Positions 1 to 25,668 of a stretch of 64,000 nucleotides of DNA are shown in pieces. The first letter of the stretch is position 1, and each line of letters starts with the position of its first letter. Source of the DNA: Haliotis rubra (taxonomy: Eukaryota); assembly GCF_003918875.1 (NCBI RefSeq), contig NW_025767356.1:310001-374000 (forward strand), read 5' to 3'. Made by a program: the position numbers and the translations under genes. The notes beneath the pieces are model-generated. The model was not told the origin of the DNA. It saw only the letters and a list, made by a program, of their open reading frames with translations, and did no database searches.

Positions 1-680
1 TTGATAACTGTCTGGTGCTACTGCAGTCGGTAAGGGAATGGTCTTATTTGTGATGATTTTCTTAAACTGATATATACTTGACAAAAATAGTTACGGATAT
101 ATGTAAATTTTGAAATTATGAATTATGATCTATTTATTCATTTACACCCTGATAAAATATCAATCATAAAAATACTAATATACCTAACTTATTTTGTCCA
201 GTATATATGCACCATGCTGCTGAATTACAGGTAACGTTTTAGACCGGTGGGTTGTACATGGTACAAGAGTTCATAAAGAAACATTCTATGTGATTCAGGA
301 TCAGGAAACCCAAGCGTTATGCAGTGCGGGTTGAGAGTGCGATATACCACCGTCAACATCCTGATACAGACAAGGGAGGCAACAGAGCTGCTGATGTAAC
401 GGCTATAGATGACATCAACACAGACTCTGCTGCTATCAACCAGGAACAACGTAAAGGAGCAAATGGCGGCGATTATGACACATTGTGCAGGATGTGGTCA
501 ACAGAAGACAATGTAGTTAACCAGAGGTCCGACGTGGCGTCGGTGTACAGCCATTTGTCAGGAATTGACAATCTGGGTGGTTGGACCATCGAAAACCATT
601 ACGACAGCACCGCTGTACCCATGTATGACAGGAGACCTGTTGATAATTTATATGACAGAACACATGTCCCGGATATATAG
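1..680 (+). CDS. CTL-A: 3' end (TM-exon end + cytoplasmic exon) of a type-I receptor, paralog of CTL-C
   Basis: Exon ..1-29 (LITVWCYCSR, donor GTAAGG at 30, phase 2) splices in frame to exon 299-680 (acceptor TGATTCAG): RIRKPKRYAVRVESAIYH...GDYDTL...ASVYSHL...ENHYD...YDRRPVDNLYDRTHVPDI*. This aligns along its whole length with the last exon of CTL-C (25105-25477). The ectodomain lies outside the window. Confidence 0.8.
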
Positions 681-3873: not shown

Positions 3874-3944
3874 GTATCGTTAAATTGCTAATGGAATTTC
3901 GATGCTCAGTTAAAAATGTCTTTGTTGTCCAAACCCCTCATCAT

Positions 3945-5472: not shown

Positions 5473-6034
5473 GTGTGGACATAAATACATTGCAGAGACT
5501 TCACGCACTTGAGAGCAGAGTCATCTGGCACCTGTGATTAGATGACTTTGGGATTTTGGGGGTTTGTTTTTTGTCCACCCACTCAGTAATTGTAACTGAC
5601 CCTGTTTTAAAATAGTTAGTGCTATCTTTTAGTAACAAGATGATTTATGCTGAATGTGACCGCAGACAAGTACGGGACCGAGGCTGGCCTTTGGATGTTC
5701 CTGTACTCGGAAGCAAGAACTGCTGAAGCCAGTCTGTTTCTATTGTTATTGCTGCTTGAAGGTCGGATTGTGCACATATATACATGTAACATCTGTTGAG
5801 GGTTTAGTAAATTTGAAAAAATATAACATCGCTGAAATATTTGGTTTTGAGTAACGTATGTTGTGACGTACACGCTCATCTTCTTACCTTACCGAACTAG
5901 CTCTATCAGGCGGGGTGTGAACCGTCATAGCGAGTCATTCAGTTGCGACAGGAAATTGAACCACGTTATAGGTGTGGTATTTCGCGAGTGTTGAGAAGGG
6001 GAAGTAGTGCTTTATTGTGGGAGGGGTGGCTGCA

Positions 6035-9000
6035 ATGTCTCGCTGTAACGTAAACCCTATACCGCTTGTCATGAGGGTACTGATACTCCTGGACGCCAGT
6101 CACATACAGGGTACTGTCAGCCATATTTCATCAGGTGAGTAAACAATACAGTTTTATGTGTTAATAGATTGACACGACTACCTTGTGAAACCGGAGATTA
6201 CATTTCCTCCAAACATTCATGTGTCAATGCACCTATGTTTATGGATATGCTATTCGTGTTGGTTAGTGGATACAAAGGCCATTACCCATCTACGGTATCA
6301 TTAAACGGATGGATCCCAATTCATACTTGTATTGACTACTGGAACTCATTCACAAGAAATACCCAATATGTAGTGTAATTCCTATACTCGTATGCAAGTA
6401 TCATATAGGTAGCTATAACACGAGGGGTTACACAGGGGATGCATTGATTCCACTGAATTTGTGTATTCGCTTTCTTTGTGTTAAGTATGAAGAAATACCA
6501 AACATGGTGTGGTTGTCATTATATATAATTATTGTCATTTCCTGAAACTAAGTAAATGTCATTGTGTCTCTTCCTCAGTTACATTTGAATCGTCCTGTGT
6601 TGCTCTCAATTGGTCGGCAGCAGAGACAGACTGCAGCAAAAAGAACGCCACTATATTCACTTTACTGGATTTAGCTGCACCCATCGGCGGGAAAGTATTA
6701 CTGAACGCCACAGCTGAACATACCAGAATATGGATAGAGATCAATGGTAAACCTGAAACTTAACTTTCATTGTTACAATGAACTACAGGTCTAGAATTCT
6801 GTTTCGTGCGCCACCAGGCTAGAACAGTAACCCTAGTTTGCTGTAAACTGACAGTGATCAACCATTGTTGAAAACGCAACATGTATATGGTTACAAACCA
6901 CCTTTATACATTCACCGAATAGTATATTTAAACCAACAGGTACCACATGCAAGACAGCTTCCAGTGAGTCATTCCTCCCGGCAAGCTGTAGTGACACCAA
7001 CTATTATGTCTGCAAAGGGAACACAAGTACCAGTAAGTATTTTGACAGAGAGAATCCAATCACAATTTACAGGAAATGGTGTGTTTTCATGGCAATGAAT
7101 ATAGTCAGTGCGACATGCTTGTTGAACAGGGAGGGGCTGAAAGTGTTCTTATATTTCAATCTACACTGAACTCACGTATGATGATAACCATGGCATCAAC
7201 TCTCATATCAATTACATACAGTCAGACTCGGCCGATGATATATGCGTTTATATATATAATTAACAACCCGGTTAATTATGGATATACATATGCTAACATC
7301 TACACCTAACCCAGGAGGTACCACCTACATGACAGCTCACAAGTTGTCCTTCCTCCGACGAAACTGTAGTCACACAATATGTAGTGTGACACTTACCCTG
7401 TTGAGAATGTTTTGGTAAACCTTTCACAGCAGGTTTAAGTAACCGTTTGCAAACTTTCACCGAAATTATCTCTATACTATCGGAAGCTCAGGCAGGTTTC
7501 CGAAATATTTATTCAACCAGTGATCACGTATTTACTTTACAAAACTTTCGGATTTTGAAAGCTAACTTCTACAGATGTAGAAATTATTTTGGCGTTTGTA
7601 GATTTTCAAAAACTATTAAAACTAGCATATCCTGAAAGGTTTTGAACGTCATTTATAATATGTACCAGGATAACAAATCAGATGTTTCCTGTAATAACAA
7701 TTAAACACGTTACTTTTCATGTAAATCTTGAGTTAGAAAAGGAGAAAAAACAATTGCCGCCTGTCTTGATTGGGATTTTCTTTAATGATCTCTAAATTTC
7801 TATTTTCTTTTACAGTAAACACAGCTATATAAGAACTAAAGTTAAACAATTTATATTCAAGATATCATTTTAATTCTCTCACGACAATAATTCGTTGAAA
7901 CAACGCCACTATAACTAAGACGCATTTACAATATGAAACTGCTAAACATTCACAGAATACTCACAAAAACTCATTACTGACGTGATCCGACAGCAGACAA
8001 AGCTCTTGTAGGTAACTAGTCAAGGCAGCGGGATATATCTTGTCCATGTCTACACCTCGGTAACGAGACTTTGGTCGAAACGGCACTGTCCAACCACATT
8101 ACAGTGTTTTGCATATAAGGCGAGATAACGACTAAAATGTCTGCAAATGGAACACAGATACCAGATAGGTATTATGACGGAGATATTGTATCACATATTG
8201 CGACATTTAAGCATGGGCTCAAAGCGGTGATGAATCTATGAAAGAATGAGATTTGTGAACTACGTATGAAATAGCCACTGAAAACACACTGAAAACCTAT
8301 GTTTATTCCGTTGGCTAACACAGCTCGATGTGACTAGTGATAAAATCATGTAACTCCCATGACATGCCTTCAGTGGATGCAGCATGATAAATAAGATACG
8401 ACAGAAGGTTCCTATTGTGTGTCATGTTTTATCCTATATTGACAGGTCCTGATCGGTACGTACCATGTCGGGAGGGATCCGCGGACACGTCTACACAAGG
8501 TACAGGCGTTGTACACAGTTGTACTTCTCAAAATACAAATGGTGTTATGTCCGCTATGTGGTATTCACGTTGACAGGCGAAAACGAATATGTTTGGGCGA
8601 TATTGACATACAAAAACAGACTTCCTGGCATGTGCTTCAAATATTGGTAAATGATGACAAATGCAAGGCATGGAAGAACATGTATCGACGATTTCTCTTG
8701 GATCATATTTTACTCACCTTTTCCTTGGCAACTGCAAAATTACCTACCTGTAAATAGTGGGATTTTGTAGTTTTACACACAGCGGTTTACATATCTTTAC
8801 CCGAGTAAGGGGTGTCACAGTATGTTGTGCATACGTGAAGTTGCCTCCCTTGGGCTCTTCCAGCAGCTTTCCGTAGGTTTCTATTACGGAAAGGAAGCGA
8901 AGGTGCGAATGAAAGTCATATGTAGATATTATGGTCATATATCTTTTCTTATTGTCTCCCAGGGCCTTGACTGTGCTACAATATGACAATCACAAAGACA

Positions 9001-10467
9001 GGCATTTGGACGCACCATATTTAGATATTATGGTCATATATCTTTTCATTTGTGTCCCAGGGCCTTGATTGTGCTACAATATGATAATCACAAAGACAGG
9101 CATTTGGACGCACCATAGTTGTTTATACGTTGTTTCAGGATCTTCAGGGTCGACAGCACTGAATTTGTCAACGACAACCCAAGGTTCAAACAGTAAAGGT
9201 ACTATTGATGACTGTAAAACTATCTGATAGTTAATTGTGCGTATGATCATCTTGTCGACCGAGTTTAGGTTTGTACAAAATTGTTTGTGTTATTAAGTTA
9301 TACGGAATTGACAAGGGTTTTACAGTCCCGTACACTCTTTCAAAACACCGTGTAACTAAATATTGTACAATCGACTCTGCTTTTAGCAGATATTTCATAT
9401 GGACGTGGAAAGGGTTTTGTAGCTTCTTTTTACTATTTTAATATTTCGGTGAATGGGTCACACTATGATGTATGTTAAGGAGAACACTATGTATTGACAA
9501 ATCTATGTCACATTGATACAAACGACGGTCAGATTAATCACTGGTTACCGTACACCAGATTTAGACACACTTCTCCAATAAAAGTATCCATAATGAAAGA
9601 ACCTCCTATTGGATAATTCCACTGTATAATAAAATAAGGCAATATTTTTCTGCAAGATGTTTAACACATGCATCGTTTCCCACAATGAATGTGGAAATAT
9701 TTATATTGATCGCATTTTATACGTTGTCTGAGGTTTATCACAAAGTGACTGTTTACACATACCTGTTCAAGAGATCCTTAGTTTGTATTCATGTGTTTCA
9801 GTTACAGTGATCTCTGTTGTCACATGTGGGATACTGGCGCTTGTTGCTGTCACCAGTGGCCTTGGCTGCTACTTCATCCAAAGGTAAGATACCGTAATTA
9901 CTGGATAACACATGTGCGTTATTCTCGGTTGGTGACTAAATTCACAAAAAACAACATTGCTGAGAGCTAAAGTATTGATCCAATTTAATTCGAAATGTCA
10001 TTGAAAGCAAAAGACTAAATAGTGATAACACTTATATGAATACATCACTGATAATCAGTGATAACACCAGGTGTTTGTGAAACCGGCAAGCTGCTATAAG
10101 AAACATTCAAACTGACCAAACTGGTCAGCGTCCTCCTCAAACTCTCCTCCTGGGATGATTTTATGTAAAGATTTGTTACGTGTCAACCTGTGCATCAACC
10201 TGTGCATATCTTAGTGTTGGCTTATTAATTATGTTATCGTCCACCAAATATTTAGATCGTTGCTCATCCTTACATTCTAAAGATTACATTTTCAGGAAAA
10301 AACCAGCACCACTAGGAAATCATCAGGTTGTTGCACGTGAAGGACAAGCTGAAGAGCATTACTTCAGTCATCTAGAAGCTGGAAATGCTTCAGAAACCAA
10401 CAATTATGCTACGCTTCATGACCCTGCAAATATCGGACGGATATCTGCAATCCAGTTGGATGATTGA
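6035..10467 (+). CDS. CTL-B: type-I membrane protein with compact C-type-lectin-like domain (~242 aa)
   Basis: Exons: 6035-6134 (leader); 6579-6746 (ESSCVALNWSAAETDCSKKNAT...IWIEIN); 6940-7032 (GTTCKT...ASCSDTNYYVCK); 8446-8499; 9139-9198 (S/T stalk); 9802-9883 (TM VISVVTCGILALVAVTSGLGCYFI); 10296-10467 (tail HYFSHL, NNYATL). All introns GT-AG, phases consistent, 729 nt open. Confidence 0.8.
7395..7800 (+). mobile_element. Degenerate LINE reverse-transcriptase fragment
   Basis: ILSEAQAGFRNIYSTSDHVFTL matches the non-LTR RT QxGFR...STxD motif; disrupted downstream. Confidence 0.75.
8922..9117. repeat. ~97-bp local tandem duplication in CTL-B intron 4
   Basis: AGATATTATGGTCATATATCTTTTC...GGACGCACCATA occurs twice; single copy in the paralogous CTL-C intron. 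Confidence 0.8.
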
Positions 10468-11596
10468 TAACATGAATCCTGAACATGTACTTGTAACCGT
10501 TGTGACAAAATCCATGGTTACACCAGCTGTGGATGTTATCACAGGATCTGCACATTTCCACTACTCTGTACATCTTAATCAAAATATTTCACCTAATCTC
10601 CTTGATCTCTGTACATCTCAAACTTTACTTCCTTCTCACTCGCCTCCTGTACGTACGTTATATGTTGCTTGTAAATCATATTCTGCCATTCATCCAATGA
10701 AGGGACAAGAAGTGACCCATAAATGTCGTGTTGTAAATCATAAAGACGTTGTAAATCCATACCAACCGTTGTTATGTTACCTTCCAACTTCTAAATACCC
10801 ACGAAGCATCTCACTGCTTTGTTCATTATTAATCACGTGTACATAATTATCATCATCACATCAAAGCTGACCCGTTACTGCAGGGTTACGTCATGTGTGT
10901 GCTTATTGTTATCTTGGTCTGAAGCTTATTCATTAAAATACTACCTTATAACTTCTTGTGATGTATTGTTTAATCAGTGTTTGCAATGTTAGATGGTGTA
11001 ACTCCGTGTCCCCACCTACACGTAATAGCGGGCAACAGAAACAAGGAAGAAGACACTATAATGTGCTAAAACTGACTGAGTGCATGAGTGCAGGTCACAC
11101 TAAGCTTCATATTTATGGATTCCTCTAAATTGCTAAACATTATTTCCTGTTTCAGTTTAATAATACTTTGCACGATGAGGATTAATGCGTAAAGAATAAA
11201 GCATTGTCTGGGTGTTATCATATACGGAAATAACTGCTGCACTGTCGAAAACACTATCTGTGCTCAGCGGGGCTGTGTTTGTAGACTGAGTGTGTATTCA
11301 TGCATGTTAATGGTGAGGAGAACATTGTTTTATTCTACACTTAAATGAGCCATTGCAGATACATTAAATCATCAACTAATGCAAAATGTTGTCTGACAAA
11401 AAGACGTGTTGTAGGTACAGTACGTGTAGGCACGTGTGTATTGTGGCAAATAATATATACTTGACAACCATTTTGAAATAAGAAGATGAAGTGATGAAAC
11501 CCGTTTTGATAATTAAATCACAATTACCCAGCTAACACACTACGGATTCACAACGTTGTAGTGATGTTGTAGTTTACGTTGTGGATTACGTTGTCG

Positions 11597-14500
11597 CAAC
11601 CTAGTTACTAAGTCGCTGTCTTACCTTATCTCACAACGTTGTAACAACCTAGTTACTAAGTCGCTGTCTTACCTTATCTCACAACGTAATAACAACCTAG
11701 TTACTAAGTCGCTGTCTTACCTTATCTCACAACGTAATAACAACCTATTTAATAAATCACTACAACGTAATAACAACTGTCTAAGTCGTTCTTACCTTAT
11801 CTCACAACGTAATAACAACCTAGTTACTAAGTCGCTGTCTTACCTTATCTCACAACGTAATAACAACCTAGTTACTAAGTCGCTGTCTTACCTTATCTCA
11901 CAACGTAATAACAACCTAGTTACTAAGTCGCTGTCTTACCTTATCTCACAACGTAATAACAACCTACTCACTAAGTCGCTGTCTACCTTATCTCACAACG
12001 TAATAGAAACCTAGTTACTAAGTCGCTGTCTTACCTTATCTCACAACGTAATAGCAACCTAGTTACTAAGTCGCTGTCTTACCTTATCTCACAACGTAAT
12101 AACAACCTAGTTACTAAGTCGCTGTCTTACCTTATCTCACAACGTAATAACAACCTAGTTACTAAGTCGCTGTCTTACCTTATCTCACAACGTAATAACA
12201 ACCTAGTCACTAAGTCGCTGTCTTACCTTATCTCACAACGTAATAGCAACCTAGTTACTAAGTCGCTGTCTTACCTTATCTCACAACGTAATAACAACCT
12301 ACTCACTAAGTCGCTGTCTTACCTTATCTCACAACGTAATAGCAACCTAGTCACTAAGTCGCTGTCTTACCTTATCTCACAACGTAATAACAACCTACTC
12401 ACTAAGTCGCTGTCTTACCTTATCTCACAACGTAATAACAACCTAGTTACTAAGTCGCTGTCTTACCTTATCTCACAACGTAATAACAACCTAGTTACTA
12501 AGTCGCTGTCTTACCTTATCTCACAACGTAATAACAACCTAGTTACTAAGTCGCTGTCTTACCTTATCTCACAACGTAATAACAACCTAGTCACTAAGTC
12601 GCTGTCTTACCTTATCTCACAACGTAATAACAACCTAGTTACTAAGTCGCTGTCTTACCTTATCTCACAACGTAATAACAACCTAGTTACTAAGTCGCTG
12701 TCTTACCTTATCTCACAACGTAATAACAACCTACTTACTAAGTCGCTGTCTTATCTCTTATCTCACAACGTAATAACAACCTAGTTACTAAGTCGCTGTC
12801 TTACCTTATCTCACAACGTAATAACAACCTAGTTACTAAGTCGCTGTCTTAACTTATCTCACAACGTAATAACAACCTAGTTACTAAGTCGCTGTCTTAC
12901 CTTATCTCACAACGTAATAACAACCTAGTCACTAAGTCGCTGTCTTACCTTATCTCACAACGTAATAACAACCTAGTTACTAAGTCGCTGTCTTACCTTA
13001 TCTCACAACGTAATAACAACCTACTTACTAAGTCGCTGTCTTACCTTATCTCACAACGTAATAACAACCTAGTTACTAAGTCGCTGTCTTACCTTATCTC
13101 ACAACGTAAAAACAACCTAGTTACTAAGTCGCTGTCTTACCTTATCTCACAAACGTAATAACAACCTAGTTACTAAGTCGCTGTCTTACCTTATCTCACA
13201 ACGTAATAACAACCTACTCACTAAGTCGCTGTCTTACCTTATCTCACAACGTAATAACAACCTAGTTACTAAGTCGCTGTCTTACCTTATCTCACAACGT
13301 AATAACAACCTAGTCACTAAGTCGCTGTCTTACCTTATCTCACAACGTAATAACAACCTAGTTACTAAGTCGCTGTCTTACCTTATCTCACAACGTAATA
13401 ACAACCTAGTTACTAAGTCGCTGTCTTACCTTATCTCACAACGTAATAACAACCTAGTTACTAAGTCGCTGTCTTACCTTATCTCACAAACGTAATAACA
13501 ACCTAGTTAGTTACTAAGTCGCTGTCTTACCTTATCTCACAACGTAATAACAACCTACTTTACTAAGTCGCTGTCTTACCTTATCTCACAACGTAATAAC
13601 AACCTAGTTACTAAGTCGCTGTCTTACCTTATCTCACAACGTAATAACAACCTAGTTACTAAGTCGCTGTCTTACCTTATCTCACAACGTAATAACAACC
13701 TAGTTACTAAGTCGCTGTCTTACCTTATCTCACAACGTAATAGAAACGTAATAACAACCTACTCTACTAAGTCGCTGTCTTTGTCTTACCTTATCTCACA
13801 ACGTAATAACAACCTAGTTACTAAGTCGCTGTCTTACCTTATCTCACAACGTAATAACAACCTAGTTACTAAGTCGCTGTCTTACCTTATCTCACAACGT
13901 AATAACAACCTAGTTACTAAGTCGCTGTCTTACCTTATCTCACAACGTAATAACAACCTACTCACTAAGTCGCTGTCTTACCTTATCTCACAACGTAATA
14001 ACAACCTAGTCACTAAGTCGCTGTCTTACCTTATCTCACAACGTAATAACAACCTAGTTACTAAGTCGCTGTCTTACCTTATCTCACAACGTAATAACAA
14101 CCTAGTTCACTAAGTCGCTGTCTTACCTTATCTCACAACGTAATAGACAACCTAGTTACTAAGTCGCTGTCTTACCTTATCTCACAACGTAATAACAACC
14201 TAGTTACTAAGTCGCTGTCTTACCTTATCTCACAACGTAATAACAACCTAGTTACTAAGTCGCTGTCTTACCTTATCTCACAACGTAATAACAACCTAGT
14301 TACTAAGTCGCTGTCTTACCTTATCTCACAACGTAATAACAACCTAGTTACTAAGTCGCTGTCTTACCTTATCTCACAACGTAATAACAACCTAGTTACT
14401 AAGTCGCTGTCTTAACTTATCTCACAACGTAATAACAACCTAGTTACTAAGTCGCTGTCTTAACTTATCTCACAACGTAATAACAACCTAGTTACTAAGT

Positions 14501-17373
14501 CGCTGTCTTAACTTATCTCACAACGTAAAAACAACCTAGTTACTAAGTCGCTGTCTTACCTTATCTCACAACGTAATAACAACCTAGTTACTAAGTCGCT
14601 GTCTTACCTTATCTCACAACGTAATAAAACAACCTACTCACTAAGTCGCTGTCTTACCTTATCTCACAACGTAATAACAACCTAGTTACTAAGTCGCTGT
14701 CTTACCTTATCTCACAACGTAATAACAACCTAGTTACTAAGTCGCTGTCTTACCTTATCTCACAACGTAATAACAACCTAGTCACTAAGTCGCTGTCTTA
14801 CCTTATCTCTCACAACGTAATAACAACCTAGTTACTAAGTCGCTGTCTTACCTTATCTCACAACGTAATAACAACCTAGTTACTAAGTCGCTGTCTTACC
14901 TTATCTCACAACGTAATAACAACCTAGTTACTAAGTCGCTGTCTTTACCTTATCTCACAACGTAATAACAACCTAGTTACTAAGTCGCTGTCTTACCTTA
15001 TCTCACAACGTAATAACAACCTACTCACTAAGTCGCTGTCTTACCTTATCTCACAACGTAATAACAACCTAGTTACTAAGTCGCTGTCTTACCTTATCTC
15101 ACAACGTAATAACAACCTAGTTACTAAGTCGCTGTCTTACCTTATCTCACAACGTAATAGAAACCTAGTTACTAAGTCGCTGTCTTACCTTATCTCACAA
15201 CGTAATAACAACCTAGTTACTAAGTCGCTGTCTTACCTTATCTCACAACGTAATAACAACCTACTCACTAAGTCGCTGTCTACCTTATCTCACAACGTAA
15301 TAGAAACCTACCTAGTTACTAAGTCGCTGTCTTACCTTATCTCACAACGTAATAGCAACCTAGTTACTAAGTCGCTGTCTTACCTTATCTCACAACGTAA
15401 TAACAACCTAGTTACTAAGTCGCTGTCTTTACCTTATCTCACAACGTAATAACAACCTAGTTACTAAGTCGCTGTCTTACCTTATCTCACAACGTAATAA
15501 CAACCTAGTTACTAAGTCGCTGTCTTACCTTATCTCACAACGTAATAACAACCTAATAGCAACCTACTAAGTCGCTGTCTTACCTTATCTCACAACGTAA
15601 TAACAACCTAGTTACTAAGTCGCTGTCTTACCTTATCTCACAACGTAAAAACAACCTAGTTACTAAGTCGCTGTCTTACCTTATCTCACAACGTAATAAC
15701 AACCTAGTTACTAAGTCGCTGTCTTACCTTATCTCACAACGTAATAACAACCTAGTTACTAAGTCGCTGTCTTACCTTATCTCACAACGTAATAACAACC
15801 TACTCACTAAGTCGCTGTCTTACCTTATCTCACAACGTAAAAACAACCTAGTTACTAAGTCGCTGTCTTAACTTATCTCACAACGTAATAACAACCTAGT
15901 TACTAAGTCGCTGTCTTACCTTATCTCACAACGTAATAACAACCTAGTTACTAAGTCGCTGTCTTACCTTATCTCACAACGTAATAACAACCTAGTTACT
16001 AAGTCGCTGTCTTACCTTATCTCACAAACGTAATAACAACCTAGTTACTAAGTCGCTGTCTTACCTTATCTCACAACGTAATAACAACCTAGTTACTAAG
16101 TCGCTGTCTTACCTTATCTCACAAAACGTAATAGCAACCTAGTTACTAAGTCGCTGTCTTACCTTATCTCACAACGTAATAACAACCTAGTTACTAAGTC
16201 GCTGTCTTACCTTATCTCACAACGTAATAACAACCTAGTTACTAAGTCGCTGTCTTACCTTATCTCACAACGTAATAACAACCTACTCACTAAGTCGCTG
16301 TCTTACCTTATCTCACAACGTAATAACAACCTAGTTACTAAGTCGCTGTCTTACCTTATCTCACAACGTAATAACAACCTAGTTACTAAGTCGCTGTCTT
16401 ACCTTATCTCACAACGTAATAACAACCTAGTTACTAAGTCGCTGTCTTACCTTATCTCACAACGTAATAACAACCTAGTCACTAAGTCGCTGTCTTACCT
16501 TATCTCACAACGTAATAACAACCCTGGAACCTAAGTCGCTCTTACTTATCTCACAACGTAATAACAACCTAGTAACTAAGTCTCTTACAAATCTCACAAC
16601 GTAATAACAACCTAGTTACTAAGTCGCTGTCTTAACTTATCTCACAACGTAAAAACAACCTAGTTACTAAGTCGCTGTCTTACCTTATCTCACAACGTAA
16701 TAACAACCTAGTTACTAAGTCGCTGTCTTAACTTATCTCACAACGTAAAACAACCTAGTTACTAAGTCGCTGTCTTAACTTATCTCACAACGTAAAAACA
16801 ACCTAGTTACTAAGTCGCTGTCTTAACTTATCTCACAACGTAAAAACAACCTAGTTACTAAGTCGCTGTCTTACCTTATCTCACAAACGTAATAACAACC
16901 TAGTTACTAAGTCGCTGTCTTACCTTATCTCACAACGTAATAACAACCTACTCACTAAGTCGCTGTCTTACCTTATCTCACAACGTAATAACAACCTAGT
17001 TACTAAGTCGCTGTCTTAACTTATCTCACAACGTAAAAACAACCTAGTTACTAAGTCGCTGTCTTAACTTATCTCACAACGTAAAAGCAACCTGAAACCT
17101 ATTTACTAAGTCGCTGTCTTACCTTATCTCACAACGTAATAACAACCTAGTTACCTTTTACTTCACAAGTCGCTGTCTTACCTTATCTCACAACGTAAAA
17201 ACAACCTAGTTACTAAGTCGCTGTCTTATCCTTATCTCATCAACGTAATAACAACCTACTTACTAAGTCGCTGTCTTACCTTATCTCACAACGTAATAAA
17301 ACCCTAGTTACTAAGTCGCTGTCTTACCTTATCTCACAACGTAATAACAACCTAGTTACTAAGTCGCTGTCTT
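11597..17373. repeat. 48-bp satellite (AACCTAGTTACTAAGTCGCTGTCTTACCTTATCTCACAACGTAATAAC)n, ~120 copies
   Basis: Highly homogeneous head-to-tail array with no unique spacers; 16-aa repeat in the ORF track. Confidence 0.98.
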
Positions 17374-17980
17374 ATGCTGCAATTCCTTTCCTCTTAAGTT
17401 CAACATATGCATTAACGCATGTTGCAGTGTTTGGTCCTTCAGTATTGCAATATGTAGTGTGTTTCTATCGGCGGTTGACGTTTCGTTGACAGATTCTATT
17501 GATATCCATTTTGATAGTTTTTATGTTTCGCCTTTTTAACATACATCAAAGGATAAGTTGAACTGAAGTTAATTTGGCACAGGCATTTGAAGAGGGAAGG
17601 CGATGTGATACTGAATACATGTTGTGTTAACGATCTGTTTGTGTGTGAGCGTGTGACGATCATCCTGGTCCACTGATCCTACAAAGCTGTGGCTAATGCT
17701 CCAGTAAACAACCACGTTATCAATATCCACTGACTCAAAAAAGATTACTGGTCCCTTCAGAAACAAATCGGAACTGTAAAACAATAAGTGGACTGTAGGC
17801 CTTGCCTTTCTGTATGAATTATTCGTCATAATTAATTTCATTTATATCAAATCGCTATGACAAGAATTGTGAACCGAGCATACGGATAATGTGTTAATAT
17901 GGGAAGTATGTCACCCTTCTGTGTTAAACAGACAGCATTGATCCGTAACCTGGAACTTTAAAATCATATTTGTATTTCGG

Positions 17981-18182
17981 TGCAAGGTGACACCACTACA
18001 TAGAGAGGTCCATGTTGGACCACTTGAAGGGTGGGGTTGGGGACAGAATGCAAGGTGACTGGACCACTTTCAGTATAGAGGAGTGGGGTTGGGGACAGTA
18101 TGCAAGGTGACTGGACCACTTTCAGTATAGAGGAGTGGGGTTGGGGGCAGTATGCAAGGTGACTGGACCACTTTCAGTATAG
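17981..18182. repeat. ~52-bp minisatellite, 3-4 copies
   Basis: TGCAAGGTGACTGGACCACTTTCAGTATAGAGGAGTGGGGTTGGGGACAGTA repeated. Confidence 0.85.
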
Positions 18183-18802
18183 AATCTCCGGCCATTCACG
18201 ACCATGATACGTTAACAACAGACAGATAAGAAGGGTGATGTCTGCGGAGGTCTTTCAGCCTAGACGTGGAAAGCATACCTGTGGTTTTGTTTGTTATTTA
18301 ACTTGTTCAATAAGCAATCCTCTTGAACCACACGGATTCATGTAATGATGCGTGATCCGTATGTGTTCACCAACAACAGAATGAAAACAGAATGATAGCA
18401 AACATATTTACATGTTTAGGCTGTGTTTAAACAAACAAACAAACAAACCAAGACATGTACATGATATTGTCGCGATTGTAAAATCGTCTTTACAGATGTT
18501 TCTTCTGGATTGTGGAAAGGGGTTTGTGTGTTGTATTAAGGTTATTAATGTTATTTAAATCATGTTGTAACACTCAGATGACATGTACCAATCCTCTGTT
18601 TGTAAATCAAATACATGAGGGCATATTGTTTCCTCTTAGATAAGGCACTTTTATCAGATTGCCCTGCACAATGTAGCCGTATCAGCTGAAACAGTCATGG
18701 CGAGTCATTTAATTGCTACGAAGCAGGAAGCTGAGTCACACTGCATGTACCGTGTACGCGAGTTGTTGACAGTCAGTATTTACAAAGCGGCCTGTGTGAA
18801 GG

Positions 18803-21800
18803 ATGGCGTCAGTGTCCATCTCCCGTCTAAAACCTGTATTGACAGTATTGATACTGATGATAGCGTGGCACACAGACAGTACTACCAGCAACAATACTAC
18901 AGGTGAGTGGACAGTAATGTTTTAGTCACGTGTATTGAGGCTCTCTCGCTGGGACACAAGTACAGGTGGAAGTGCAGGTGTTTTGGTGATATTATAATTA
19001 GATTTCCTGCTTAGATTTAGCAAGTTGATCTGAGTTTTATTGGAGTAATTGTAGATATCGATAACTGACACTGAATAAAAGAATTGATTAACCATGAATG
19101 TTTATAACAACCAGAATATCAGAAAAACTATTGATATCGCATCTACAAGCATCACTTTCTACAGTTCATAGTTATGGAAATTAACGTCAGTTGATAAGTT
19201 CGCTTGACCAGTAAAGCCCTAAAGGTTATAATACGAAAGAGTCAACGAGTTAGGTGTTAATGACAACAGATACTTGGTGATGAACTATGTACGAACCAGC
19301 ATCAACTGCTTCCTGATTCGACATTAAGTAACACATGCTTCTGTAGTATAGGACATAGATATTTCGGAATATAATTCTTGTTTCGTCAACACTATTACCT
19401 TGTAAATCATCCGTACGTCGTGTCAGCGGTAACGAGTACACAAAGTTATTTGGTTCACAACATGCGAAGGGCTGAACAAAAACGTATACCTCACTATTAA
19501 CAGTTATGCACTAGATACAGAATACTACAATAATACATCACATAGACGGTTTGGTAACATCCAAGTCTACAAAAGATGATCACAGAATACACGATAACAA
19601 GTCCAGATGTAATGGCGGTAAAACTTCACCCCAGCATATTCACTGTTTACAGTTATTTATTAGATATCAAATAAAACAAAACAAATACAATTTTGTGGAT
19701 TTATTTCAGAATCTTCATCAAATATTACAGAGTTCATGACGACAAGTTCAAATAGCAATAACGGTAAAACTGTCACCACACCATACTCACTATTTACAGT
19801 TATGTACTAGATAGGGGCGGTGGGGTAGCCTAGTGGTTAAAGCGTTGGCTCGTCACGCCGAAGACCCGGGTTCGATTCCCCACATGGGTACAATGTGAGA
19901 AGCCCATTTCTGGTGTCCATGATATTGCTGGAATATTGCTATAAGTGGCGTAAAACCCAAATCACTCACTCACTATGTACTAGATATCTAATATATATAC
20001 GAGTTCAATATCACTGTATATCATCCACATATTCACCGTGAAAGGTAATCTATTTGATAATAAAGCATCACATATCACAGTACAGCTTCAGCATATATTT
20101 GTAGCTGGTCATTAGATATCCAATAAATCAAGAGTCACCTATCACGACGTATCTCCCGCATATTCACTATTTGCAGTTGTGCATTAGATATTTAATAAAA
20201 CAGCACCTATCACGATGTATCTTCAGCATATTCACTATTTGCAGTTGTGCATTAGATATTTAATAAAACAGCACCTATCACGACGTATCTTCAGCATATT
20301 CACTATTTGCAGTTGGGCATTAGATATTTAATAAAAGTTATTGCATTAGATATTTAATGCAACAGCAGCCATCTGACGATGTCAGCACATATCACGCAGT
20401 TGTGCATTAGATATCAGCCATATCACGATGTATCTTCATATTCACTATTTGCAGTTGTGCATTAGATATCTAATAAAACAGCATATCACGACGTATCTTC
20501 AGCATATTCACTATTTGCAGTTGTGCATTAGATATTTAATAAAATAGCACATATCACGACGTATCTTCAGCATATTCACTATTTGCAGTTGTGCATTAGA
20601 TATCTAATAAAACAGCACCTATCACGACGTATCTTCAGCATATTCACTATTTGCAGTTGTGCATTAGATATCTAATAAAACAGCACCTATCACGACGTAT
20701 CTTCAGCATATTCACTATTTGCAGTTGTGCATTAGATAATATCTAATAAAACAACACATATCTGGCGGTATATCTTCAGCATTTTTACTACTTGCAAATG
20801 TGTATTATATATAATAGAAAACATCACATAAACAGTTTTAATATATTTCAGAATCTCCAACAAACTCCACGTCAAGTCTCAAGAGCAGCAATGGTCAACC
20901 TGTCACCATCAATTGTACGAAACTATTTTGTTATTTTCTTCATGTATATTACATTTGGTAATAACTTTCCTGTGTATTCTACTAGTAAACACTTCTACTT
21001 TGTGAATGCATTGAGCCTTGAACATGACTAATATCATGTGTTGGTATGATTTAATACAATATACGAGTTTTTTTGTGAGAATGAGTTGAGTGGTGAACAG
21101 CATCCAATCATGTTGACGATATCTTACCCAGCGTCCACTTCTAGATTGAATCTGGGAATTGTCTTGTGTGTGATCCTCGGTCTGTGAGCTCTGTTCCCAA
21201 GTTCATGTAATATCCAAACTGAATTATATTAATCAACAGATAACTCCCTACCGAAAAGACTGAATTATATAGTTTTCGCCGCTCAACAGATAACTTACTT
21301 CCTATCATGGGGGAATCAACCCGGGTCTTCGGCGTGACGAGCCAACGCTTTAACCACTGACGGACTCCCCTCCTTTGGTGTTCATGTCTAATATACGACT
21401 CTTTGGTGTTAGTTAGAATAGGACGGTGAGTAAAGCAGCCTGGGTCGAGCCCTGTGTTTTCGATGGGGTGTTCGCCATAACTACTAGTTAAAATCAAATG
21501 AGATAAGTACAAATGATCCGAGGAGTTTGACAACAGATACACAGATTTCACTGAAATTTACTTACACACTTTCTTTGTGTTCCCTACAGAGAAATACCCG
21601 ACATGGTGTGACGTATGTGCTGAAACTAAGTAAATGTCATTGTGTCTCTTCCTCAGGTTACATTACATATGAATCCTCCTGTGTTGCTCTCAATTGGTCG
21701 GCAGCAGAGACAGACTGCATCAACAAGAACGCCACTATATTCACTTTACTGGATTTAGCTACAACCATCGGCGGGAAGTATTACTGAAAGCCAGAGCTGA

Positions 21801-24800
21801 ACATACCACCATATGGATAGGGAACAATGGTAAACCTGAAACTTAACTTTCATTGATATAAAGCTGTTACAATGAACTACAGGTCTAGAATTCTGTTTCG
21901 TGCGCCACCAGGCTAGAACAGTAAAACTAGTTTGCTGTAAACTGACAGTGATCAACCATTGTTGAAAACGCAACATGTATATGGTTACAAACCACCTTTA
22001 TACATTCACCGAATAGTATGTTTAAACCAACAGGAACCACCTGCAAGACATCTGTCAATGACTCATTCCTCCCGGCAAACTGTAGTGACACCAACTATTA
22101 TGTCTGCAAAGGGAACACAAGTACCAGTAAGTATTTTGACAGAGAGAATCCTATCACAATTTACAGGAAATGATGCATTTTCTTGGCTTAGAATATACTC
22201 AGTTCGACATGCTGGTAGAGCAGCCTTCCAAGGGATGAAAGTGTTCTTAATACCATATACCCTGAACTCAGGTGTGATGAGGACAAGCATCAACATATTT
22301 ATAATTTACTGTCGGAGACGGTCACTGATATATGCACCTATGCATATGATGATAAACCATATTCAGTGTGGAAACACTTCCTATATATTGTACTAAACAA
22401 GCATGTACGACCTGCCATACAGCGCACGGGGAGCCATTCCTCCAGGCAAACTGTAGTCACACAATAAGAGGGAGCCTTATCACGAGGGTATACGGTCTCA
22501 TCTACCCTCTGTGTTGCCGTGCACCAGGGCGACCATGTTTGTTTGATTATTGGGTAAACTTGGGTAAACACAGCTATATGCAAACTACAGTTAGCAATTC
22601 ATATTCAAGATATTGTTCTCTCACGACAACGAAAACTGCTAACAATTAAAGCAAACAAGCAACAACAACAAAAACAGAGAAAAAGTCTCACAAAGGTCTG
22701 TACCGTGTGACCTCTGAAGCAGCTGATAGAAAACTGATTTTCCAAATGACTGTGTCTGGCTCATCCCACAGGAGGAAGTAATTTTCTAACAATAACAATG
22801 ACGTTCTGAACGTTACAATTCTAAGGAACAATCAGATATTTGGACTGTCGCCCGAATAGAGGGGTTCATTGTAGGATCGAAAACTCGCGAAATACGTCAT
22901 CCAGATCGAGCTCGGTTTCTCCCTGCTGGCGTGGTCCAGCAACAGGCAGTTGATTTTGTGTATGACATGCATGGGGGCACTTATTTTGTACATATATTTT
23001 TTCTCTGGGGGGCAATTAACATTGTACATGCTTCTCCATAAAAAGCATCATCACACACCCTAGCCATAAATTATGAACGGTCCCTAAACGTGATTGCATA
23101 TAAGATATACACCAAACTAACATATTTTGAGGACAGGGCCAATGGTAGATGCACCTATAAAAACATGTGAAGTATGTAACAGTACTCACTGACAACACGT
23201 TGAAAAACTGACTAAGTTCCTTCCGTTGGCTAACACAGCTCGAAGTGACGAGTTACAAAATTATGTAACTCATATGACATGCCTTCAGTGGATGCAGCAT
23301 GATAAATAGTATACGACAGAAGGTTCCTATTGTGTGTCATGTTTATCCTATATTGACAGGTCCTGATTGGTACGTACCATGTCGGGAGGGATCCACGGAC
23401 ACATCTACACAAGGTACAAGTGTTGTACACAGTTGTACTTCTCAAAATACAAATGGTGTTGTGTCCGCTATGTGGTATTCACATTGATAGGCGAAAACGA
23501 ATATGTTTTGACAGACAGACAGACAATTTATTTCGAGTATTCAAGGCCATGGCCCATATTACAAAAGGGTTTTAACAGGTGTATTCATGCTGGTCATATT
23601 ACAGGTATCGTGTCATCGGACGAGACAAGCAAACAAAAAGCTCTGGTAAAATAACAGAGATGCTAACTAAACTATCACACAATATTTCAGCATATGTACT
23701 GAAGATCTAATTATAATTTGTTGTATTTCTTATCCTAAAGGCTTTATATAAAAACCTTGCCAAACTTAATATCACAATCTTATCAGTGCTTGACATAATT
23801 CTAACAAAATTGTCTATAGAAGGGCTATTTCTTATGCTATTAAGAAGACATTCTCTTCTTTCGGCTTCATAACGCTGACAGATCATCAAGACATGAAATT
23901 CATCTTCAACAAGAAATATTTTTATTATGACAATATAAGCAAAATCTTTCACTAGCAGTTAAATTGCAATGCCTTCCTGTTTCAATTGCTAGCCTGAAAT
24001 TATTACACCTGAAATTACAGATAACAGTTCTTAAATGCTGTGGAATGACAATTGAAAGATAAGACTCAACATGTAGCATTGTTTTAAATTGACAATAAGT
24101 TTGGGCAATATGGACAAACAAAACAGGGCGATATTGACAAAAAAGACTTCTCGATTTGTGCTTCACATATTCAGTTTGGTAATGATGACAAATGCAAGGC
24201 ATGTAAGAATGTATCGACGATTCTCTTGCATCACAGTTTACCCACTTTTTCCTTGACAAGTGCAAATTTACCTTCCTGTAGATAATGGGATTTTGTAGTT
24301 TTACAGACAACGGTTGGTATACTTTTACCCGAGTAAGGGGTATCACAGTATGTTGTGCATGCATTTAGTTGCCTCCCTTGGACTTTCCAGGAACTTGTGG
24401 TCGTAGGTTTCTATTTCGGTAAGGGCACAAAGTTGCATATGAAAGTCATATATAGATATTATGGTCATGTATCTTGCGTCACTTATTGGTTCCCAGGGCC
24501 ATGATTGTGCTACTGTATGATAATCACAAAGACAGGAAGTTGGACGCACCTTAGTTGTTTGTGTGTTGTTCCAGGATCTTCAGGATCGACAGCACTGAAT
24601 TTGGCAACGACAACCCAAGGTTCAAACAGTAAAGGTACTATTGATGACTGTAAAACCATCTAATGTTACATTGTCGTTTGATCATCTTTTTCTTCAAAAT
24701 TGATTGTGTTATTAAGTGGGTAAAGTAATTAATATCACAAGATTAAGTTCGAGCTGCAAATGTTCAGTCACCCCTTTTCTATATAATGGTGTTTCACATT

Positions 24801-25477
24801 TAATTTATAAAATTTAACAGTGACCGTACATGAGCTCATACAAAATATCCATTTTCATATTTGTTCTTGGTTACAGTCATCGCTTCTGCGACCTGTGTTA
24901 TAGTGGCTCTCGTTGCTGTGTTCATCCTCTCAGGCATCTGCATCATTAAACGGTACGATTTATGTTTTTTGTAAATGAGTCAATACGTCTGTAAATATAA
25001 GTAGGTATCTATTAGATAAAAACAAAAATCTCTATTACCTTCACCCAACAACCTCTCATCTGTCCATTTGACCCTTCTCTGCATGCCCTGTTGTCTTCCT
25101 TCAGCAACAAGAAACCCATCAAGTATGCCGTGAGGGCTGAGAGCGCCATGTATCACAAACAACACCCGGATCCTGCTCAAGTAGAAGAACCAAAACTGGC
25201 AGATGTACAGATGGTTGTTAGTTCGACAGAAGCCGGCATTGGGAACGGTGGCATTGACGGAAGACCGGACGGAGAATATGACATTCTGTGTGGTGTAATG
25301 GGCAGTGAGGGGAAAGCTGCCACGTCGGATACCACGACCGTGTACAGTCATCTACGTGGAAATATCGCAGCAGATGATTCTAAGGAAGAAAACCATTATG
25401 ACACCGCAACGCTGCCACAATATGACAGGAGACCTGTAGACAAGATATATGACAGACTACATGTACCTGACCAGTAG
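18803..25477 (+). CDS. CTL-C: compact C-type-lectin-like type-I receptor with ITSM-like tail (~309 aa if a 1-nt deletion is corrected; otherwise a pseudogene)
   Basis: Exons: 18803-18902 (signal MASVSISRLKPVLTVLILMIAWHTDS); 21657-21829 (173 nt, versus 174 needed; AA at 21776-77 where CTL-B has AAA, giving TGA at 21785; corrected frame gives TIWIGNN); 22034-22126; 23360-23413; 24575-24634; 24877-24952 (TM); 25105-25477 (GEYDIL, TTVYSHL, ENHYD, YDRRPVDKIYD). Confidence 0.8.
19814..19973 (+). mobile_element. tRNA-derived SINE, family 1, with 13-bp TSD
   Basis: A/B boxes, (ACTC)n tail, flanked by TATGTACTAGATA on both sides. Confidence 0.9.
20090..20790. repeat. 68-bp minisatellite in CTL-C intron 1
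   Basis: Unit ATTTGCAGTTGTGCATTAGATATCTAATAAAACAGCACCTATCACGACGTATCTTCAGCATATTCACT, ~10 copies; diverged copies extend further on both sides. Confidence 0.9.
23510..24095 (-). mobile_element. LINE 3' fragment inserted in CTL-C intron 4
   Basis: Minus-strand FRCNNFRLAIETGRH...RFCLYC...VEDEFHVLMICQRY is a non-LTR ORF2 C-terminal Cys/His motif; (TGTC)n tail; absent from the aligned CTL-B intron. Confidence 0.85.
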
Positions 25478-25668
25478 AATACTCATATTTAGTAACAAGG
25501 ATATATAAAATACATATTACTGGTGTACTAGACAGTGCTTGTAAGCTGAATTGAGAATTGTGTTGATAGGGACAAGAATTGGTTCCCACTTTACAGCTAT
25601 CGTAAAGACTTCAGTAAACACTCCATCTCCCCGGTTCAAGATGTATTAGAAAGCTTCATAAGGCTGTA

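Follow-up and report, generated by a model that had tools for sequence, protein, structure and literature searches.

CTL-B and CTL-C are two real genes of Haliotis rubra, arranged in tandem on one strand with about 8 kb between them, the four ectodomain exons and neighbouring introns of which are 83-98% identical in DNA, whereas identity falls to 47-65% in the leader, transmembrane (TM) and tail regions. We consider it likely that they are separate transcribed genes representing two old tail lineages, the ectodomains of which were repeatedly overwritten by gene conversion that spared the TM segments and tails. Judging from the sequences, this ectodomain-limited conversion ('merohomogenization') appears to have operated in two lineages, H. 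rubra and H. cracherodii, leaving a clear evolutionary signature in an apparently abalone-specific gene family, labelled merely 'uncharacterized protein' in databases.

The genes occupy positions 6035-10467 (CTL-B) and 18803-25477 (CTL-C) of the window, i.e. the whole stretch of 64,000 nucleotides that was analysed (Table 1). The reading frames of both are complete, 242 aa long in CTL-B and 311 aa in CTL-C, and encode type-I membrane proteins with the same plan: a leader, a compact C-type-lectin-like domain (CTLD) encoded in two exons, a stalk in two further short exons, and one exon each for the TM segment and the tail. They are closely linked paralogous membrane-receptor genes, as are paired opposing receptors. 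The CTL-B model is identical to RefSeq XP_046546981 (P0012, isoform X7), and CTL-C is identical to P0009 from its second CTLD exon through the stop. A preliminary description of this DNA had sought the leader exons near 6440 and 21540, away from their true places. The acceptor of the CTL-C TM exon depends on a G/A polymorphism at 24869 (24869 G>A: X1, 75.2/137.2; X2, 35.1/35.1); the alternative acceptor moves the start to 24877, and the RefSeq isoforms X4 and X5 lack the corresponding 'VT'.

Table 1. Features of the CTL-A, CTL-B and CTL-C genes, and of the tracts shared by CTL-B (B) and CTL-C (C), in window coordinates.
Feature	Position	Strand	Evidence or remark
CTL-A, remainder of gene	leader at -2890; CTLD exon 1 at -2384		Upstream of the window
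CTL-A tail exon	324..680	+	ORF; tblastn with C tail, 43% aa; matches H. rubra LOC124257074 (P0022)
CTL-B leader exon	6035..6134	+	33 codons + 1 base, donor CAG|GTGAGT; signal-peptide and donor scan; identical to P0012 N-terminus
CTL-B CTLD exon 1	6579..6746	+	Phase 1-1; alignment, splice sites; model = P0012
CTL-B CTLD exon 2	6940..7032	+	Homologous joint in C present in RNA contigs
CTL-B exon 3	8446..8499	+	Cys-containing stalk piece; alignment, splice sites
CTL-B exon 4	9139..9198	+	Ser/Thr-rich stalk; alignment, splice sites
CTL-B TM exon	9802..9883	+	No charged residue
CTL-B tail exon	10296..10467	+	57 aa; HYFSHL, ten residues, NNYATL; B-type orthologues P0013, P0014, P0015
CTL-C leader exon	18803..18902	+	In RefSeq isoform X6 (P0016); aligns with B leader region at 61%
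CTL-C CTLD exon 1	21657..21829	+	Assembly one base short near 21775-21777, frame shifted
CTL-C CTLD exon 2	22034..22126	+	Joints 21831>22036, 22126>23361 (run X7); matches P0009
CTL-C exon 3	23360..23413	+	Joints 22126>23361, 23411>24573
CTL-C exon 4	24575..24634	+	Joint 23411>24573 (runs X7, X12); splice sites
CTL-C TM exon	24871..24952	+	X7 record 28 on 24870-24951, then 25104-25600
CTL-C tail exon	25105..25477	+	124 aa, seven tyrosines; orthologues P0001, P0010, P0011
Homogenized tract 1	B 6529-7207 = C 21612-22297
Homogenized tract 2	B 8288-9237 = C 23199-24673 (23199-23508 + 24126-24673)
C-private insertion, 617 nt	23509-24125		Intron 3; retroelement-like ORF fragments on minus strand; interrupts tract 2
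B-private 98-nt tandem duplication	8917-9117		Interrupts tract 2

The frameshift of CTL-C is an assembly error: every contig of run X1 that crosses the site inserts one base relative to the assembly, and in-frame versions of CTLD exon 1 occur in RNA-like contigs. The preliminary description had overlooked it. As a consequence of this error RefSeq fuses CTL-B and CTL-C into one gene, LOC124257045, with chimeric isoforms among X1-X7, and expression studies relying on the current H. rubra annotation will mis-assign reads, owing to both the frameshift and the merged locus. Taken at face value, the RefSeq locus would be a single gene with alternative 3' cassettes, the B leader and ectodomain being followed in some transcripts by the B TM and tail and in others, owing to read-through, by the C exons with the C TM and tail, so that the pair would be a product of splicing. 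Isoforms X3 and X5 indeed put the entire B ectodomain on the C TM and tail, and X1, X2 and X4 put the B leader and CTLD exon 1 on C from CTLD exon 2 onwards. We nevertheless find this reading improbable, for the following reasons. First, CTL-C has its own leader exon, which isoform X6 uses, and shares homology with CTL-B in the 5' region. Second, the frameshift forbids an intact all-C model and would bias an annotator towards chimeras, while the near-identity of the B and C exon ends lets junction reads map to both. Third, contig depth in the RNA-like runs is zero at 20850-21167 and 21486-21644. Fourth, the annotation of H. rufescens keeps B-type and C-type genes apart, as distinct loci.

Transcription of two separate genes is also suggested by the RNA-like runs themselves, which are guessed to be RNA, bear a different organism label and supply contigs only, silent on expression level, tissue and full-length B versus C transcripts. 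These contigs are confined to exons, with GT..AG joints; one joins the TM exon of CTL-C to its tail exon, another continues from the ectodomain exons into 320 nt that do not fit CTL-C and is therefore B-type, and a single run, X7, contains both B-like and C-like spliced contigs.

Comparison of CTL-B with CTL-C by self-BLAST and MAFFT windows yielded two colinear blocks of high identity. In tract 1, identity is 91% over the last 50 nt of intron 0, 92.8% in CTLD exon 1, 98.4% in intron 1, 91.4% in CTLD exon 2 and 81-97% in the next 175 nt; in tract 2, it is 90% over the last 158 nt of intron 2, 94% in exon 3, 83-95% in intron 3 and 97% in exon 4. Outside these tracts the windows gave 57.5% for the 5' flank and leader exon (61% in the BLAST HSP), 65% for the TM exon and 47% for the tail exon, in line with the far greater divergence noticed earlier for these parts, and the 3' halves of the tails still align significantly at the nucleotide level (local alignment, z=6.2; 0/300 shuffles). 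The positions 6770-7080 and 21866-22175, described as matching 'almost base for base', are about 96% identical. At the protein level, identity reaches 106/125 residues (85%) in the ectodomain, with a further 2-residue indel, versus 15/28 in the TM and 14/55 in the tail. The extracellular part is therefore much more alike than the TM and cytoplasmic parts, as in paired receptors, although 'near-identical', the earlier wording, overstates a similarity that leaves 19 of the 125 aligned residues different.

Conservation between the two genes is concentrated in the ectodomain exons, as would follow from purifying selection on the binding domain, acting with no sequence exchange. Yet homogenization has reached the introns to at least the same degree as the exons, and coding constraint thus fails to explain the similarity. 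When non-coding sites only were considered, the maximum chi-square interval (6546-7076) held 4 mismatches in 270 sites versus 147/455 outside, and 0/200 shuffles were as extreme, which refutes this explanation; we regard it as highly improbable. It is likewise at odds with a dN/dS of about 1 (pN = pS = 0.072 for the two ectodomains) and with the orthologous ectodomains of other species, which share just 63-69% of their residues, the CTLD blocks of H. rubra and H. cracherodii being about 65% identical in DNA. Furthermore, the CTLD exons of the youngest tract have diverged further (about 92% identity) than intron 1 has (98.4%; Fisher p=0.0005). Together with the dN/dS value, this indicates that the ectodomains are not being kept identical, which weakens the earlier suggestion that both receptors bind the same ligand.

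A single recent event of exon shuffling, by partial duplication or unequal crossover, that set an ectodomain copy before a pre-existing TM and tail would need no recurrent conversion and would likewise leave exons and introns highly identical up to abrupt limits, such as the sharp drop at about 9238. Such an event is unlikely to account for the locus, since the flanks of the tracts are homologous but much older (about 70% identity over 6430-6528 and 65% over 7208-7400, besides the leader region and the TM exon), the ages of the tracts differ widely (98%, 90-95% and 81-83% identity), and the gene order A-B-C is common to H. rubra and H. cracherodii, where homogenization was separate and far more recent. 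In the latter species, CTL-B and CTL-C share 96-99.6% of their nucleotides, in introns as well as exons, over the stretch from the 5' flank to exon 4.

Recurrent conversion is further supported by the comparison of orthologues from four annotated Haliotis species, of which one, H. asinina, yielded no B-type gene. In the ectodomain tree, the H. rubra B and C sequences are sisters (93/90) within a clade containing the C sequence of H. asinina (98/99), and the B-type is not monophyletic. In the TM and tail tree, the B-type genes form a clade (100/99) and the C sequences of H. rubra and H. asinina group together (98/96). AU tests, in which the groups were named after the pattern already seen by eye, rejected both a B-type clade forced on the ectodomain (p=0.0004) and an H. 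rubra B + C group forced on the TM and tail (p=0.0019). Ectodomains cluster by species and TM segments and tails by type, the pattern of post-speciation homogenization. The preliminary description had proposed comparing ectodomain and tail exon trees, and their incongruence, the homogenized introns and the recurrence in H. cracherodii all agree with the ectodomain-limited gene conversion that it put forward.

The two blocks could in principle be haplotypes of one gene assembled side by side: the assembly has indel errors and contains a 22-kb contig, C1852, that follows the B locus colinearly and shares about 90% identity with it. For B versus C such an artefact is refuted, and we give it hardly any credence, as the leaders, TM exons and tails differ between the two genes, orthologues of either tail type exist in other species, short-read contigs from two samples span the diverged C parts with 0-4 differences each, and the A-B-C order recurs in H. 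cracherodii.

From these data, we propose that the two tail lineages predate the split of H. rubra from the lineage of H. rufescens and H. cracherodii, the B-type having a short tail and the C-type a long seven-tyrosine tail related to that of CTL-A. Non-allelic gene conversion would repeatedly copy the ectodomain exons and introns between the genes, in some species along with the leader and 5' flank, while the TM and tail exons would escape it. Each species would thereby end up with a single current version of the ectodomain attached to two dissimilar cytoplasmic tails, and the difference between the tails may be maintained by selection as the ligand-facing parts change together.

As previously noticed, the CTL-C tail matches that of CTL-A (43% aa identity, E 1e-24 to 1e-28); its tyrosines lie in KYAV, MYHKQ, EYDIL, VYSHL, HYDT, QYDRRPV and IYDRLHV. 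In H. rufescens and H. cracherodii, the B-type tails carry DYY(S/C)(H/Q)L, ten residues and then NNYA(T/A)L, a spacing between the two YxxL motifs that falls outside the 6-8 of a strict ITAM. Phenylalanine at the first of these motifs (HYFSHL, correctly set against TVYSHL of CTL-C in the preliminary description) is specific to H. rubra, where it recurs in a second assembled copy, contig C1852. All B-type TM segments examined lack a charged residue, as was said of CTL-B. With ITIM defined as (I/L/V/S)xYxx(L/V) and ITSM as TxYxx(V/I) (PMC2832619), no B- or C-type tail fits a strict ITIM, ITSM or ITAM, and CTL-A alone (SVYSHL) fits the ITIM. The ITSM label formerly given to TVYSHL must be dropped, all the more because the orthologues from H. 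rufescens, H. cracherodii and H. asinina have Ala at position -2 (AVYSHL). Nor is a 'decoy or decayed tail' supported for the B-type TM and tail, the lineage of which is conserved across H. rufescens and H. cracherodii. The B-type and C-type tails may signal differently, via phosphotyrosine docking.

Modelling predicts for the ectodomain a CTLD-like fold with four core cysteines. In Foldseek searches with the AlphaFold2 model (pLDDT 84), the best 50 of at least 500 matches were all CTLDs (probability 1.00, TM-score 0.56-0.70), NKR-P1A/B coming first among the matches listed (TM-score 0.62-0.67). A profile search of PDB sequences also returned CTLDs only, with NKR-P1B as the best (E=2.9e-4), and paired all four core Cys positions with it, about 29 residues of the long-loop region being missing from the alignment. 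Pfam Lectin_C (PF00059) scored 13.7-17.5 bits, below its gathering cut-off of 22.6, and matched by just the N-terminal half of the profile. Having no long loop, and no EPN/QPD or WND sugar- and Ca2+-binding motif in its 87 residues, the domain is not that of a classical Ca2+-dependent C-type lectin.

Ectodomain-limited concerted evolution with different tails counts as a distinguishing mark of the leukocyte receptor complexes of vertebrates (KLR, KIR/LILR, Siglec and CEACAM), and in the literature searched we found no description of it for tandem receptors of a mollusc. We tentatively raise the possibility of an abalone paired-receptor system of independent origin, in which the CTLD might track a fast-changing ligand (a pathogen surface or self marker) and be synchronised by conversion on a short ITAM-like or endocytic tail and a long seven-tyrosine tail, the short tail of H. 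rubra being perhaps partly disabled by the Tyr to Phe change. If true, this would be a case of convergent 'merohomogenized' opposing receptors in a lophotrochozoan. The locus offers comparative immunologists a concrete place to ask whether receptor pairs with opposing signals exist beyond vertebrates.

Three known systems invite comparison. Siglec-5/14 and Siglec-11/16 (PMC4042635, PMC5701461) are likewise tandem pairs with different tails and gene conversion restricted to the exons of the extracellular part, but their activating partners combine a short tail with a charged TM residue and DAP12, and their ectodomains are, in the wording of these papers, nearly identical, as compared with 85% protein identity in the abalone pair. 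The rodent and primate KLR paired receptors (KLRB/NKR-P1, KLRC/NKG2, KLRA/Ly49), for which 'merohomogenization' was described (Fossum et al. 2011, PMC3210942), differ in being type-II proteins with an N-terminal tail, unlike the type-I abalone proteins with their signal peptide; in their long-loop region, which the abalone CTLD lacks; in having activating partners with a charged TM residue and adaptor and inhibitory ones with a strict ITIM, neither of which occurs in the abalone pair; and in a kinship limited to the fold (12-23% sequence identity). They resemble the abalone genes as clustered paralogues with a CTLD ectodomain, homogenized after speciation in the ligand-binding part only, with signalling parts distinct by type, and NKR-P1A/B are the best structural matches noted above. 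CEACAM1 and its CEACAM3-type partners (Kammerer and Zimmermann 2010, PMC2832619) have an Ig-V domain instead of a CTLD, a CEACAM1 tail with a defined ITIM and ITSM, and pathogen-receptor and decoy roles shown experimentally. Similarly to the abalone pair, however, they are type-I proteins in which a long tyrosine-motif tail is paired with a short one lacking a charged TM residue, gene conversion and recombination maintain the similarity of the exon for the ligand-binding domain, and the short tail has its own YxxL-based ITAM-like motif, to which the abalone B-type tail can be likened.

Using self-BLAST and pairwise alignments, we found that the tandem C-type-lectin-like receptor genes CTL-B and CTL-C of Haliotis rubra (hereafter B and C) share two colinear blocks, which bears out the preliminary description of near-identical ectodomains (83-98% identity) joined to diverged leaders, TM segments and tails (47-65%). 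The second block is interrupted by a 98-nt tandem duplication present only in B and by a 617-nt insertion present only in C, the latter lying in intron 3 and carrying minus-strand ORF fragments that resemble the 3' end of a retroelement. The contrast in identity between segments is real and is no by-product of coding constraint, because it is visible at the non-coding sites alone: 4 mismatches in 270 such sites within 6546-7076 versus 147 in 455 outside, with a maximum-chi-square value as high in none of 200 shuffles. Furthermore, the H. rubra tracts are of unlike age (identities of 98%, 90-95% and 81-83%) and their flanks are older homologous sequence (61-70% identity), so that repeated conversion fits the data better than one partial duplication.

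Features of genes B and C (window positions) and identity between the two genes
Feature	B	C	B vs C identity
Block 1	6529-7207	21612-22297	
Block 2	8288-9237	23199-23508 + 24126-24673	
C-private 617-nt insertion, intron 3		23509-24125	
Leader exon	6035-6134	18803-18902	
5' flank + leader			57.5%
Intron 0, last 50 nt			91%
CTLD exon 1			92.8%
Intron 1			98.4%
CTLD exon 2			91.4%
Intron 2, last 158 nt			90%
Exon 3			94%
Intron 3			83-95%
Exon 4			97%
TM exon			65%
Tail exon			47%
Extra CTLD exon 2 copies, intron 2	7307-7375, 8124-8195	22394-22462	
Minisatellites on both sides of B	3944-5477, 11597-17374		

The degenerate extra copies of CTLD exon 2 in intron 2 of both genes (53-63% amino-acid identity to the real exon, one or other Cys missing, B and C versions diverged) are possibly pseudo-exons, or else old alternative exons. 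One of the two minisatellites flanking B has a 24-nt unit in about 64 copies (31.6 when counted as a doubled unit of 48 nt), and the other a 48-nt unit in about 116 copies over 5.8 kb, with a strong GC skew.

An orthologue search covering four Haliotis species (HMMER with the C tail, then with full-length proteins) recovered genes with the long C-type tail in H. rufescens, H. cracherodii and H. asinina, genes with the short B-type tail in H. rufescens (two) and H. cracherodii, and likewise the CTL-A-like (A-type) genes; no B-type gene is present in the annotation of H. asinina. From this sampling and the following lines of evidence, we conclude that these genes are a textbook case of concerted evolution, confined to their 5' and ectodomain part and occurring repeatedly, in two lineages, in line with the gene conversion restricted to the ectodomain that had been suggested earlier. 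First, the introns of the H. rubra pair are homogenized along with the exons. Second, the maximum-likelihood trees of separate partitions conflict. The ectodomain partition places rubra B as sister to rubra C (93/90), nests the two in a clade with asinina C (98/99) and leaves the B-type genes scattered over the tree. With TM plus tail, all four B-type genes fall into one clade (100/99), and asinina C groups with rubra C (98/96). Comparing ectodomain and tail trees had been one of the checks put forward in the preliminary description, and their incongruence is significant: AU tests reject both monophyly of the B-type genes in the ectodomain (p = 0.0004) and monophyly of rubra B+C in the TM plus tail (p = 0.0019). 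Third, the gene order A-B-C is common to H. cracherodii and H. rubra, and B and C of H. cracherodii are 96-99.6% identical in DNA from the 5' flank (here included in the homogenized part) through exon 4, introns included; between rubra and cracherodii, each of the four comparisons of the CTLD blocks gives only about 65% identity.

The possibility that B and C represent a haplotype mis-assembly was considered, and no sign of it was found. Another H. rubra assembly contig, C1852 (22,023 bases), is colinear over its whole length with 5318-17374 of the window at about 90% identity, a match that covers gene B and both flanking minisatellites. Its copy of B has frame-breaking indels in five of the seven exons and two spoiled acceptors, and C1852 is possibly a haplotig that was neither collapsed nor well polished, or else a pseudogene copy.

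At H. cracherodii L016:10001-15700, the B-type leader exon and the small exon following it are repeated at a spacing of about 2.1 kb (three leader copies, two small-exon copies); this small exon encodes a Ser/Thr-rich piece of about 18 aa and has no counterpart in H. rubra, and the C-type gene at the same locus has no exon 3. In H. rufescens (JALGQA010000031.1, 3.46-3.54 Mb; loci L012, L010 and L011), the family is expanded and reordered: an A gene, the truncated C-type gene LOC124136740, whose tail ends before EYDIL, two B-type genes 90% identical along their whole length, and a further copy cut by the locus end. This region is too rearranged to serve as a clean replicate of the homogenization.

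Splice sites, phases and a leader scan gave seven exons for each H. rubra gene and placed the leader exons elsewhere than first read (see the table). The B protein, of 242 aa, matches RefSeq XP_046546981 (P0012) without a single difference; the C protein has 311 aa after the addition of one base in CTLD exon 1, where the assembly reads GGGAAG at 21775-21777 versus GGGAAAG in B, which shifts the frame and leads to a premature stop. We placed the contigs of four public short-read runs on 20850-25600. In run X1, the best of these runs for DNA, two contigs account for the whole depth over the site, one B-derived and the other C-derived; both have one added base (A or G), and the C-derived contig reads GGK-VLL in frame. 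In-frame versions of C CTLD exon 1 also occur in the RNA-like runs (their RNA nature is our guess). Because the X1 and RNA-like contigs are in frame, we attribute the C frameshift to an error in the assembly or, at most, to a rare allele; the missing base is likely an error of the homopolymer type. The assembled contigs of X7 and X12, which belong to these RNA-like runs, have depth on exons only, with joints at 21831>22036, 22126>23361 and 23411>24573. Among the RNA-like contigs, one joins the C TM exon to the C tail exon, and another runs from ectodomain exons into 320 nt that do not match C, as expected of a B-type 3' end. The acceptor of the C TM exon depends on a G/A polymorphism at 24869: A makes the AG, and G, the assembly allele, removes it. 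Use of the next AG, 6 nt downstream, yields an in-frame product 2 aa shorter, which accounts for RefSeq having both forms that contain 'VT' and forms that lack it.

RefSeq merges B and C (6035-25477) as LOC124257045, with seven isoforms. Isoform X7 is B; isoform X6 uses the leader of C and leaves out the frameshifted exon. The other five are chimeric models that bridge a 15-kb 'intron': X1, X2 and X4 take their leader and CTLD1 from B and everything from CTLD2 on from C, and in X3 and X5 a complete B ectodomain is followed by the TM and tail of C. Taken at face value, these five models would represent genuine read-through splicing from B into C, which we regard as very improbable; given the assembly error and the near-identity of the B and C exon ends, the chimeras are probably artefacts.

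As regards the cytoplasmic parts, all seven tyrosines of the C-type tail are kept in four species. Its VYSHL motif, preceded at -2 by Thr in H. rubra only and by Ala elsewhere and with Leu at +3, had been called an ITSM, a label that fails under the strict definition of the ITSM, as does that of the ITIM (both taken from PMC2832619). The B-type tail of H. rufescens and H. cracherodii reads DYY(S/C)(H/Q)L, ten residues, NNYA(T/A)L, a YxxL pair ITAM-like in order and non-canonical in spacing. With these motifs conserved in the two species, the B-type tail is not debris, and the earlier suggestion of a decoy is not supported. In H. rubra B, the HYFSHL reading, in which the first tyrosine is lost, recurs in a second assembled copy, and the absence of a charged residue from the B TM holds for every B-type TM. 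At the DNA level, the B and C tail exons can still be aligned over their 3' halves (z = 6.2), and in a multiple alignment the B-type tail corresponds to a C-type tail that has two internal deletions and a different end. No match between the B and A tails was detectable in nucleotide or protein comparisons, and a tblastn search of the 124-kb region for a second B-type tail gave chance-level hits only, apart from the C1852 copy.

A Pfam scan of six family members returned only Lectin_C below threshold plus noise. A profile of 14 family ectodomains compared with PDB sequences matched CTLDs only (best, NKR-P1B, E = 2.9e-4) and aligned with about 29 residues of the long loop absent relative to NKR-P1B. 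AlphaFold2 modelled the ectodomain alone with a pLDDT of 84, and the structural matches listed for this model are exclusively CTLDs, NKR-P1A/B coming first (TM-score 0.62-0.67); a model of full-length B from a 10-row alignment was unusable (pLDDT 42). The domain has a compact CTLD-like fold devoid of the sugar- and calcium-binding loop, and 'lectin' here names a fold and implies no activity.

Of 125 aligned ectodomain residues, 19 differ between H. rubra B and C, and a two-residue indel brings the differing alignment columns to 21; pN = pS = 0.072, and a dN/dS above 1 between the two ectodomains was not found (0.99, Fisher p = 1). At 6579-7032, which lies inside the youngest conversion tract, the CTLD exons (about 92% identity, 20 substitutions) are more diverged than the intervening intron 1 (3 substitutions; Fisher p = 0.0005), and synonymous sites are elevated too. 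Either short later conversions restricted to the intron, or selection removing conversions that erase coding differences, would account for this excess. Derived changes number 8 in B and 5 in C, with 8 not assignable, and show no asymmetry between the genes (p = 0.58). Of the 17 CTLD substitutions, eight lie within model residues 51-73, a stretch comprising the last part of strand 2, the strand 3/4 hairpin and the loop that follows strand 4, which is the face NK-type CTLDs usually bind with; the enrichment is only suggestive. Judged from their sequences, the ectodomain differences do not appear to fit a simple story of same ligand and opposite signal; the 19 substitutions might instead have divided the binding specificity.

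We searched the literature and found no such paired system described in molluscs. Since the abalone pair shows the evolutionary hallmarks of paired receptors but falls outside the strict ITIM definition, we propose to file B/C as a paired-receptor-like locus in its evolution, an assignment of which activating and inhibitory roles are not part. The closest known phenomenon is the 'merohomogenization' described for the KLR and PIR paired receptors (Fossum et al. 2011, PMC3210942), and the closest architecture is that of the CEACAM1/CEACAM3-type pairs, whose short-tailed member has an ITAM-like motif of its own (PMC2832619).
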